A stretch of DNA of 63,416 bases, filler included, from Choristocarpus tenellus KU-1152 (taxonomy: Eukaryota > Protista > Phaeophyceae): NCBI GenBank assembly GCA_964200185.2. It is 12 parts of 12 records of this genome, joined end to end, with 100 filler letters (N's around TTAATTAATTAA, not from the genome) between each part and the next. Parts side by side here need not be neighbours in the genome. Positions count along the whole stretch, not along the records: positions 1 to 4,706 come from CAXNAD020013390.1; 11 more parts are not named here. The stretch is one strand, 5' to 3'. Each line of letters starts with the position of its first letter. The first letter of the stretch is position 1. This document shows, piece after piece, positions 1 to 4,706 of the stretch. The notes under the pieces were generated by a model, which saw only the letters and a program-made list of their open reading frames with translations, did not search any database and was not told where the DNA came from. The position numbers were made by a program, and so were the translations under genes.

Positions 1-40
1 CCAAATGGACGCGGCCCTACCCTCTAAGATACTTTGGCTC
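1..40 (+). mobile_element. MITE family A, right end only (contig start), abutting copia gag
   Basis: CCAAATGGAC box followed by TACCCTCTAAGATACTTTGGCTC, the same terminus as the full copy at 3702-3958. Confidence 0.9.
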
Positions 41-3000
41 ATATGACCACAGAGGTAACAGGAGAAACAAGGACCTCGGGGGCTATGGCGCTGCATATAG
101 GGGCAGAGTCACAGACAAGGAAACTGAGGTCTAGGAGCGGCCTCAGTTCAAACCAATGTACGTTGCCAAGGATATAATCACCAGTGGCGAGAATGCTGCT
201 CATATTTGGATGACCAACCTCCTGCTAAGCGCCCCCAGGGGTCGACGAAACCACAATTTCCACCACCACCAACCAAGAGACGGAGCAAAGGTGGCAGAGG
301 TGGAGGCAAGGCAAATCGGCAAGGATTATCAAAAACATTTCTGGCCATGAATGTGTCTGTGGGGTAGGAAGTGTATGACAGAATGGAGGAGGCAGCACAT
401 CTATCCTCCACTAAAGATCTGACCAAGACGAAGACCATCAGCCTACTATGTGACTCGGGGGCAAATGTGCATCTTACCCCAAGACTGCAGGACCTCACTG
501 CAGCAACAAAGATCACTCGCATCTGCACATTTGGTAATAAAGGTACACTCGAAGAGAAGGCAACTGGCGAGATGATGTTGAAAGCCAATAACGAGAAGGG
601 CAAGCCGACCAAGATTGTGCTCCAGGATGTGCTCTGGGTACCTGGTCTACCATGTAGACTTCTTAGCACAGGTAGCCTGCGGCGCAAGGGAGGTGAATTT
701 GTGGAATCTGGGATTAGAAGAAGCTACATTCTACCCAACAAAGGGGCAGCCAAGATCCATTTGGAGGAGAAGGGTGCTTTCCTGATGCTGAAGGTCCAGT
801 TTCAGGCAGACAATAGGAAGAAGGGCCAGCCCAAGGTCAATGCAAGCTTCGCCAACAAACAACAGCGTCTCTCCCTCTTAGACGGGCATAAAATAATGGG
901 TCACCTCAGCCCCTTTGCGATAAAGCACCTTGAAAAACGAGGACTCCTGGATATCGCAGATGCTATAGTCACCTCTGAGCTTCACTGCAAGGTATGCAAA
1001 GAGTGCAAGTCTGAAGCACTCAGTTATGCACGGGGAGGCCACAGTCCCAAGACAGTGGGGGAGGTGGTACACACAGATATGGAGGGACTTTTAATCCGGA
1101 CGTGACAGGAATGAAATATTTTCAGGTGTTCGTGGACGAAGCTAGCAGGGAAAAGCGTGTGATAGGACTGCGTACCAAGGACGCCGCTACAGCAGTCACT
1201 GCCGCCTACATAGATGAAATGGCTCGGGATGGGGTGGTAGTGAGATGCATCAGTGGAGATGGCGCTGGCGAGTTCGGAAGGAGCATAAGGTTCCAGCGCA
1301 TGCTGTCAGAGCGGGGCGTGAAATGGCGCAAGACACCCCCACGCACGCCCCAGAGCAACGGTATTGCTGAGCGGGCAATAAAACAGATTATGCAAGCTGC
1401 TCGCAGCCAGTTGATTCAAGCTGGAATGGGGGAGGAGTTCTGTTTTTTTGCAGTGGCAGACGCCACATTCAAGACCACTGGAATGTCACACGAATACTTG
1501 GGAGGCGAGACACCATATGAGCGCCTGACCAACACACCCTGTAACTACAAATGACTTCGAGTATTTGGGACAGAGTGTTTTGTACATCGAACCAAGCAAC
1601 AGCATGGCGCCAATGCTAAGTTCCACCCATATGCAAAACGGGGGATCATTGTTGGACATGACAGAGCGTCATTATGCTGGCACATATGGATTCCACACGA
1701 GGGTAAGCTGGTGACCTCAGCACAAGTGTCTTTCCAGCCTGAAGCCAAACTGCTGGAGTTAGTGGGGGAGTCAGAGCTGGACATACTGGAGGAATAAGAG
1801 TTTGATGACGACATGGACATGGGCATGAAAAATGAAGAAGAGGCTTCTGCAACAGGAAGCGAGGCAGACATGACTGAGGGTGAGAACCAAAATATTGGGC
1901 GTAGGGCTCAAGATACAAAGCACCCAGCATCCCCCCAGAGTCAAGAAATTTCTACCAGGATGGGACAACGCCAGCGCATGGATAGGGCTGCACAGATGGC
2001 AGCCAAGCGCCTAACCCCACACTCTGGACTTCGGAGATCTGCCAGGCAGGAGCAACGCCAGCAGGTAGCCTACACATCTCAACTATGTGATCAGGAAGAA
2101 GAAGAAGAAACAGCCATTAACCATTTCGTGTCAACCCTCGTGCAGCAGAATAATGAAGAAGTGTACAGTTTTATGGGTCTCATGGGGGAAGTAGCAGCAG
2201 GTCCAGACGAGCCATCTACAACCAAAGCAGCCTTGAATGGGCCAGATGGTGAGCAATGTCAAGAGGCAATGGGGAAGGAAATGTCAGGGTTATGGCAAAA
2301 GGGAACTTTTAGTGATAAGGCCCTGCCCCAAGGGAGGAAGGCAATCAAGACACGATTTTATTTCAGGATCAAGCGCTTGGCAGACGGGTGAGTGGAGCGA
2401 TATAAGGCAAGACTTGTGGCCCGTGGGTTCACCCAAAATGCAGGAGTGGACTTCTTTGAAACCTTCAGCCCGGTGGTGGGATATGACACACTACGATGCA
2501 TCATATCAGTCGCAGCGTACAGAGGTTGGAGCATAGACGCCCTGGACTTTACACAGGCCTAACTCAACGCGGATCTGCAGGAGGACATCTGGCTGGAGCT
2601 TCCTGATGGCCGCACAGTCAAGGCCGAGAAGGCAATTTATGGGCTGAAGCAGTAAACAATGGAATGGTACCATAAACTACGCAGTATCATTATATCAGAG
2701 GGATGGACAAGCAGCCAACATGACGAGTGCCTCTACTTCAAGAAGAGTGAAGACGGACGCATTGCCATTCTCACGACCTATGTGGACGACGCCTTCACCA
2801 CTGGGGACTTCACAGAAGAAATACAGGGGACGAGGGCATCATTGCTGGAAAAGTACGAGGGGTGAGACTTAGGTACACCAGACAAGCTAATTGGCGTGGG
2901 CATCACTGTGGGTGAAGATGGAATCACCTTGGATCAACAAATGTACGCTAAAAGCATTGTTATGGCTGGAATGGGTACTATAGAAATACGAAAGACATCA

Positions 3001-4055
3001 ACACCACTGGACCCCGGCATGGACCTCTCTGCTAAACAAGATCACGAGGAGGAGCTAGATCCCACCATATACCCCTATGCCAGTATTCTTGGGAAACTCA
3101 TGTTCTTAGCAGGCATGACTCGACTAGATCTGGCTAACAGTGTTCGTGAATTGGGGCGTAGAGCAGTATCTCCATGCATGAGACACTGGCGCGAACTACA
3201 GCACGTTCTGCGCTACGTAGCAGGGACATTGGATGTCTGCAATTATTATAATCGAGGAGACAAATATATGAACGAGGGGGACGAAGAACTTCTAGTGGGT
3301 TATGGAGATTCTGACTGGGGCACAGACTCCCAAACACGCAGGAGTGTCACAGGCTACATGCTACTGTTAAACAAGTCACTGATTGCCTGGCGCTCCAAAC
3401 TTCAAGGTGCTGTCACCCTCTCCAGCTCGGAGGCAGAGTGGACGGCAATGGCGTATGGCATGCGCCACTGCATTTTCCTTCAAGGCATTCTGGGGGAGAT
3501 TAGCATATTACAGGATCAGACTCCCTGGTTCTGCGACAATCGTGGTGCTATACAGGCGAGCAGAATCACAGGTTACAATGGGAGAACAAGACACGTAGAC
3601 ATGAAGCTGAAGTGCACTAGGGAATATGTGGACCAAGGCCTGTTTCATGTAGAATATGTTCCAACATTGAAACAACTAGCTGACATTTTGACTAAGCCTT
3701 TGAGTGAAAGTATCTTATAGGGTACGGGTTTTGCCCTGTTTGTCCATTTGGGGCTTGGCTTCTCATGCCTTTTTTATGACATTTTACATACTCCAAAATG
3801 TTTCTGAGTAGTTAAAAAAATACCTATGAAAAGTTGTGTCCAGAAGACAGATATTGACACTTCCTAACAAACACGATGACCAACATTGCATCAAAATCGT
3901 AACATTGGATTTTGACCCCCAAATGGACGCGGCTTTACCCTCTAAGATACTTTGGCTCCTTTGTGTAAGAATCTTACTTCGAATTTTGTGCATTCTGTGC
4001 TTTCGCATCGGGGGTGAGCTTTTGCCTTCAACTTTGCTGCACGCTCATGGGGGAG
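41..4055 (+). mobile_element. Decayed Ty1/copia LTR retrotransposon, internal gag-pol region
   Basis: Frameshifted CCHC knuckle near 157-198 (C..CQGYNHQWREC); protease LCDSGANVHLT; pre-integrase H..MGHL/CKVC; integrase VHTD, YFQVFVDE, DGAGEF, TPQSNGIAER; RT YGLKQ, YVDD; RNase H GYGDSDW, SSSEAE, QLADILTKPL. Order PR-IN-RT-RH is copia. Several in-frame stops and frameshifts. Removing the MITE at 3702-3958 plus one TSD copy restores TKPL-CKNLTSNFVHSVLSHRG*. Polypurine tract GGGGGAG at 4049-4055. Confidence 0.95.
3702..3958 (+). mobile_element. MITE family A, full copy (257 bp), TSD CTTT
   Basis: GAGTGAAAGTATCTTATAGGGTA...TACCCTCTAAGATACTTTGGCTC; CTTT at 3698-3701 and 3959-3962; interrupts copia RNase H. 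Confidence 0.95.
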
Positions 4056-4260
4056 TGTACAATATAGGCTGATAGTCTATATGGTTTATAGGTGTTTAGT
4101 GAGCACTACTAAAGACAATAGGAATGTTGGCTAAGTGGAACAAGTGTCATCGACTTGTGTTCGTGTGCTTAAAGTAATACGTTCAAGTCTCAGATGGTCG
4201 ATTTCTTATTACTTGATATAACTGGACTGATGGAGGAGTTCTGAAAATTTTCTAGCTACA
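4056..4260 (+). repeat. Probable 3' LTR of the copia element
   Basis: Starts TGTA directly after the polypurine tract; a TACA at 4257-4260 is a plausible end. The 5' LTR is not in the window, so the right boundary is unverified. Confidence 0.5.
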
Positions 4261-4348
4261 CAGGATAAGTGACATGATACGGTGTAACGGCAGGACACAT
4301 TTTGATGCGTCAGCTGATGTGTCAGCTGATATATGTGGTAAACAATAA

Positions 4349-4460
4349 GATAATAAGAGAGAGCACCCCCCACCACCGAGGGTAGTGCTCACTCCGCTAA
4401 TAAACACATCCATACCACACAAAGCAAAATACTATATTTGAGTAGCTCTAATTTGCAAAG
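4349..4460 (-). repeat. Dispersed repeat with GC hairpin (copy 1), possible Helitron 3' end
   Basis: Aligns over about 110 bp with 50235-50346; hairpin stem GAGCAC/GTGCTC. Confidence 0.6.
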
Positions 4461-4652
4461 AAACCAACACTATCGAGTTAATATTAGCCTTTCATCTACA
4501 TAACTAAGGATGAATAGCAAGAGATAAAAAGAGTGGCTAAAATCCAAAACGGGCGAAATCTGGACAACTCTCGTTTAATTTGGCTTAGTTTCGACACGCA
4601 ACAATGAGTCAACAACTTCCTGAGTACAATACTTTACTTTGCCACACAACAA

Positions 4653-4706
4653 GGGTCAAAGTATCTGGGGGGGGGATGTCGGCGTCCGTTTTTCACCCTT
4701 TTTTCG
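4653..4706 (+). mobile_element. TIR element family D, end fragment cut by a contig gap
   Basis: GGGTCAAAGTATCT-G run-ATGTCGGCGTCCGTTTTTCACCCTTTTTTCG, nearly identical to 60638-60704. Confidence 0.8.

Follow-up and report, generated by a model that had tools for sequence, protein, structure and literature searches.

Non-autonomous DNA transposons with phased, asymmetric ends in the brown alga Choristocarpus tenellus

We identified the element at positions 3702–3958 (+ strand) of the window (the whole stretch of DNA to which positions refer, 63,416 nucleotides from C. tenellus, filler included) as a genuine non-autonomous cut-and-paste transposon (MITE). It probably belongs to a clan of related MITE families (A, 257–261 bp; B, 179 bp; and the older D, ~258 bp) that share phased asymmetric ends and depend on a DDE enzyme acting in trans, most likely a Sola2-like transposase of the Sola superfamily. 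The asymmetry is real and not unprecedented, since P elements, Transib and piggyBac are similar; the novelty lies in the persistence of phased asymmetric ends in two families that have diverged, in an unstudied alga. A first-pass annotation of this DNA had described the asymmetry and proposed that the transposase requires it; the observation was largely right and the interpretation overstated.

A MITE family with exactly defined tips

The element lies in a 4,706-bp contig that consists almost entirely of a decayed Ty1/copia retrotransposon (41–4457, + strand), with pieces of protease, integrase, reverse transcriptase and RNase H (Pfam domains Pol_BBD, rve and RVT_2) and a 3′ LTR at ~4056–4457; the insertion breaks the end of the RNase H. 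The copia sequence carries several stops and frameshifts, a purine tract near 4047–4055 and an LTR of ~400 bp ending near 4457. Its nearest proteins are from C. tenellus (79–88% identity), and positions 38–3717 match contig L001 of assembly GCA_964200185.2 at 89% identity over 3.7 kb. Copia relatives are plentiful in Choristocarpus, Discosporangium, Sphacelaria and Ascophyllum.

The copy at 3702–3958 is a complete member of family A, 257 bp long and without coding capacity. As expected of MITEs, family A is short and non-coding, has inverted termini, is flanked by a target duplication and occurs in many uniform copies. The 14-bp termini of the long end (3702–3715, +) and the short end (3945–3958, −) are identical, and the inverted repeat that the tips share runs to ~23 bp. 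Termini start with GAG or GG (tips GAG, GGG or GGC), with an outer repeat of 14–23 bp. A second copy of family A is represented by its short end at positions 1–40 (−), where the contig edge truncates it; the box of this end is at 1–10 and the flank, at 41–44, reads ATAT.

The tips can be placed exactly, since hundreds of differing flanks in public sequencing runs share the boundaries at 3701/3702 and after 3958; in run X1, 519 and 599 different flanks were counted at the two family A tips. Logan contigs of four runs contain the empty allele, in which the joint skips 261 bases (257 + 4). The Logan contigs used come from four runs of a single study; run X4 carries the label of another organism, yet its variants are the same, at low depth, and we did not count it as independent. 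The hundreds of unrelated flanks, together with the 261-base skip, make the tips of family A certain and imply at least several hundred copies.

The window copy is flanked by a 4-bp target duplication, CTTT, with its left copy at 3698–3701 (+) and its right copy at 3959–3962 (+), as judged from empty sites in seven other copies of the copia element. Formally, 5 bp (CCTTT) could be read as the duplication of this copy; we rejected this because the flanks fix the tips and because 261 and 257 differ by 4. Measured against empty sites, the duplications are of 4 bp (CTTT, ACCT and AACA) or 3 bp (TCT and TGA; n = 5), and two further family A copies have a damaged duplication pair in one case and no right tip, owing to a deletion, in the other. 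The target sequence of family A is not fixed, and the insertion sites are unrelated. In another member of this copia family, family A inserted independently at a point 14 bp upstream of the site that it occupies in the window; that copy (L007 2418–2676) has lost its right tip through a short deletion.

Our sample comprised the 4,706-bp contig and ten further contigs of GCA_964200185.2, 118 kb together, plus two Discosporangium contigs (32 kb). The ~118 kb of repeat-rich C. tenellus contigs held 17 clan copies or fragments. Among eight family A copies, pairwise identity was 77–97% and size 257–261 bp. Contigs break within elements (window 1–40 and 4653–4706; L027 1–26 and 10336–10399), so complete copies are under-represented in this short-read assembly. 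The predicted fold of family A has a z-score of −4.6 because its ends are inverted. A joint running from the right tip directly to the left tip (3958 to 3702, with no letters between) is listed in three runs; it is possibly a head-to-tail dimer or circle junction and may mostly reflect adjacent copies. Among the joints listed, an opposite-strand joint inside the body (3774/3810) was considered as a long/long element and rejected, since it coincides with an internal hairpin.

Inner boxes occupy two phased positions

Behind the terminus shared by both tips of family A, the first-pass annotation had placed an inward-facing box at nt 41 of one end and nt 31 of the other. Both positions are exact: the main box of the long end is at 3742–3751 (+; nt 41) and is invariant across eight copies, and that of the short end is at 3919–3928 (−; nt 31). 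Every one of the eight family A long ends has its box starting at nt 41. Of the eight short ends, seven have it at nt 31 and the other, owing to a 2-nt insertion, at nt 33. For family B, a long and a short distance had likewise been claimed, and we measured 43 and 32 in the one complete copy (L007 6346–6524, 179 bp, boxes at nt 32 and 43), with two single B-type ends also at nt 32. The B-type end in the window (4653–4706, +), which has a G-run spacer and is cut by the contig edge, has its box at nt 32 (4684), followed by a second, weaker one at nt 43 (4695). Apart from these, the complete family B element has a third box in its body, at nt 82 from the far tip and pointing inward from that tip.

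The claim that complete copies join one long to one short end was borne out, with a near and a far box in all seven two-ended family A copies and in one complete family B copy (offsets of 10 and 11 nt). Plotted as the annotation had suggested, terminus-to-box distances in the 118 kb of same-species contigs, that of the element included, are bimodal (31–33 or 41–43, none between) rather than continuous. The combination of terminus and box was found 21 times (one of them a family D end), versus 0–7 times, on average ~1.6, in shuffled sequence.

In family A, 208 aligned bases of the long spacer contain no indel and differ by substitution at a rate of 7.7%, and the long-end box has no substitution at all; the body has 12.5% substitutions and ten indels, the spacer indel counts being too small for significance alone. 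The lower rate of change in the long spacer and box than in the body is suggestive of constraint, on small numbers.

To describe each end by a single box is incomplete. All three near-type ends of family B carry a second box at nt 43, exactly where the far end of B has its single site, and six of seven family A long ends carry a weak site at nt 32–33, the position of the short-end box. The second boxes of B score 9.1, 8.5 and 6.0 (background P 0.0004–0.0012), and the weak site of the window copy (3733–3741, +; nt 32), in the register of the short-end box and homologous to the box of family D, scores ~4 (background P ~0.005); these secondary-site scores are somewhat circular, as the box matrix was built partly from D and B boxes and the copies share descent. 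The ends are thus better described as short phased arrays of two slots, one around nt 32 and the other around nt 42, which lie 10–11 bp apart and are unequally filled, and it is better to ask which site is kept than how long the spacer is.

Families A and B are diverged relatives

The first-pass annotation had called the bodies of the families unrelated. This did not hold up: the short ends of A and B align over ~67 nt, with 21 of 26 nt identical beyond the box and ~9 of 16 in the spacer, and the bodies align weakly (z 3.8). Judging from these alignments, A and B are relatives. Their long ends are far less alike (5 of 18 nt identical behind the box), and the inner half of the long spacer has diverged, in agreement with the earlier statement that the spacers differ in sequence while the asymmetry is kept. 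Since A and B are kin, their shared asymmetry is a single inherited state that survived one divergence, not a repeated invention. That it was kept in both families despite the divergence of the long ends suggests a constraint imposed by the transposase.

Family D is older and related. The window holds a fragment (4458–4586, −) that adjoins the end of the copia LTR, matches L007 6128–6257 at 66% over 130 nt, and has a decayed terminus (4573–4586) and a box-like site at nt 33 (4544–4554). This site sits in sequence homologous to the long spacer of A; the other D end is too decayed to read. Without the B copy nested in it, a further copy (L007 6126–6565) measures ~258 bp; it has an apparent 3-bp duplication, and the nested B lies ~41 nt from the D tip.

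A probable affiliation with Sola

By its ends the clan fits Sola best, since it combines mostly 4-bp duplications and G-starting tips with a shared box core, and we rate membership in this superfamily as slightly better than an even chance. Sola elements make 4-bp target duplications (PMC10741241), and Ectocarpus Sola2-1 (Sola2-1_Ec32) has GG-starting termini, a 26-bp imperfect TIR and a 4-bp duplication (PMC12477816). Sola resembles the clan in its short, imperfect, G-starting TIRs, its mostly 4-bp duplication of unfixed sequence and its presence in brown algae. The Dictyostelium Sola2 element DFa-2 starts with GAGC at both tips, and GAG is likewise among the tips of the clan. The 8-nt core of the clan's box also occurs in the insect element Sola1_NA, at nt 28 of its TIR (PMC3845634), but this TIR is symmetric, unlike the ends of the clan. 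Three of the five duplications measured against empty sites have the 4-bp length of Sola, whereas two are of 3 bp, a length absent from Sola descriptions. Under the Repbase filing rule, the first 11 nt of a non-autonomous element should be alike within one mismatch (PMC4455052); the few Sola ends compared (DFa-2, PPa and Sola1_NA) are not alike to this degree. In the literature on Sola we came across no description of boxes spaced unequally at the two ends.

The 118 kb of same-species contigs contained no transposase or autonomous partner, and unannotated ORFs in the fetched contigs had no Pfam match. A scan with the published insect Sola1 TIR, aimed at the transposase, gave no match. When the clan's end patterns were searched for in collections of viral, metagenome and bacterial sequences, chance matches or none were returned; phages and plasmids had no match and Rfam no family. 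A pattern match common to five gut-metagenome contigs (L015, L017, L019, L020 and L022) was due to chance; it has a G-run of variable length and is unrelated to the element. No clan copy was found in 32 kb from the related alga Discosporangium, too little sequence to show absence. Among the curated Ectocarpus DDE families that we compared, none is described with both these termini and such a duplication. Elsewhere, the low-complexity repeat ORFs at L148 7852–8928, which are long and built of 6-residue and Ala/Val-rich units, fall within a gene model of 571 aa that matches no Pfam family and by its appearance is not a transposase.

Several assignments were rejected on target or terminus. The five duplicated sequences rule out the AWWT or TTAA targets of Sola1, Sola3, Kolobok and piggyBac, and the 3-bp TWA/ANT duplication of PIF/Harbinger is absent from the measured sites. 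Neither the CA termini nor the 7–8-bp duplication of P elements is present. The CAC termini and 5-bp duplications of Transib/ProtoRAG are both missing as well, as the annotation had already noted; the duplications are of 3–4 bp and the tips start with GAG or GG. It is possible, though rather doubtful, that the partner is not Sola and belongs to AcademX, to a Harbinger-type group or to an undescribed DDE superfamily. Ectocarpus Harbingers have similar GG-starting termini, with imperfect TIRs of 35–43 bp, but Harbinger duplications are 3-bp TwA/AWT, found at none of the five sites here. AcademX makes 3- or 4-bp duplications, as measured in the clan (PMC10045372). However, the Ectocarpus library lists no Academ. 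Academ tips, moreover, start with a pyrimidine, whereas clan tips start with G.

Discussion

In DDE cut-and-paste transposition, the transposase binds the two ends and brings them together, cleaves at the tips and integrates the element at a slightly staggered cut, which gives rise to the duplication. In the clan, the outer 14–23 bp would be gripped and cut by the catalytic core, and the box is a putative site for a separate, flexibly linked DNA-binding domain. Sites that repeat every 10–11 bp would face the same side of the helix. Because one end has its best site in the near slot and the other end in the far slot, the paired-end complex would probably be asymmetric, as in P element and piggyBac, and by analogy the ends of the clan may work like those of these two systems.

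The first-pass annotation was correct that the asymmetry is real and persists between A and B, and had compared it with RAG and Transib; precedents beyond these exist. In the Drosophila P element, as in the clan, a terminal repeat and an inner site lie at unequal distances: 9 versus 21 bp separate the TIR from a 10-bp transposase site, an arrangement explicitly likened to the 12/23 rule (PMC7776569). P elements differ in their CA-starting 31-bp TIRs, 7–8-bp duplications and offset of 12; the clan's offset is 10–11 and binding there is presumed. Ends of Transib and RAG signals are bipartite like those of the clan, which has no CAC heptamer, A-rich nonamer or 5-bp GC-rich duplication. Transib5, Transib2_AG and TransibN1-3_AG have bipartite ends offset by about one helical turn, whereas most Transib are symmetric (PMC1131882). 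In piggyBac, terminal and inner repeats are again arranged unequally, one end having an insertion and a duplicated segment, but the TTAA target and CC-starting termini have no counterpart in the clan. With the native piggyBac enzyme, only the asymmetric pair of ends both excises and integrates, and this pair is needed in cells (PMC7351741).

Pairing of a near with a far end could be obligatory or merely an inherited, efficient arrangement, and we lean somewhat towards the latter. We think it unlikely that the transposase follows a strict 12/23-like rule, needing one long and one short end, that evolved independently of RAG, P and piggyBac. Such a rule agrees with the near/far pairing in every two-ended family A copy and the complete B copy at offsets of 10 and 11 nt, with the length that the long spacers of A and B keep although they differ in sequence, and with the roughly equal abundance of the two ends in sequencing runs; piggyBac shows that such a requirement can exist. 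However, long/short pairing in all copies is expected when they are copied from a single master, and the eight two-ended copies go back to two masters that are themselves related. The near ends of B also hold a site at nt 43, so that B has a symmetric far-site pair, and the predominance of symmetric families in Transib, with few 12/23-like, indicates that asymmetry can be tolerated and not required. Put in terms of the enzyme, it is improbable that a Sola-type or undescribed algal transposase enforces near and far pairing through boxes one helical turn apart, as an independent 12/23-like origin with 3- or 4-bp staggered cuts.

At the other extreme, the arrangement may have no functional basis: an imperfect ~52-bp TIR would have acquired a 10-bp indel or short duplication once in an ancestor, which was then inherited, the size of a helical turn being coincidental or merely tolerated. 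The families are kin, the two ends of A make up a single inverted repeat that a 10-nt indel interrupts, and the extra DNA of the long end resembles a decayed box copy, all of which would follow from this history. Yet the long spacer of B has no decayed copy and an unrelated inner half, and its box still lies at nt 43; near and far positions also recur in phase in A and B. We doubt this account as well, and our preferred reading is the clan of MITEs with phased asymmetric ends set out above, mobilized in trans by a transposase that is most likely Sola2-like.

We know of no biochemistry yet for the Sola superfamily. If near and far pairing is obligatory, the clan would be a further independent case beside RAG/Transib, P and piggyBac and would support the view that asymmetric synapsis is a recurring solution of DDE enzymes, and the ends described here would be the first to be mapped in a Sola-like system. 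Regardless, the elements form an abundant, apparently undescribed repeat clan in an early-diverging brown alga, and their ends offer a hook toward the transposase.
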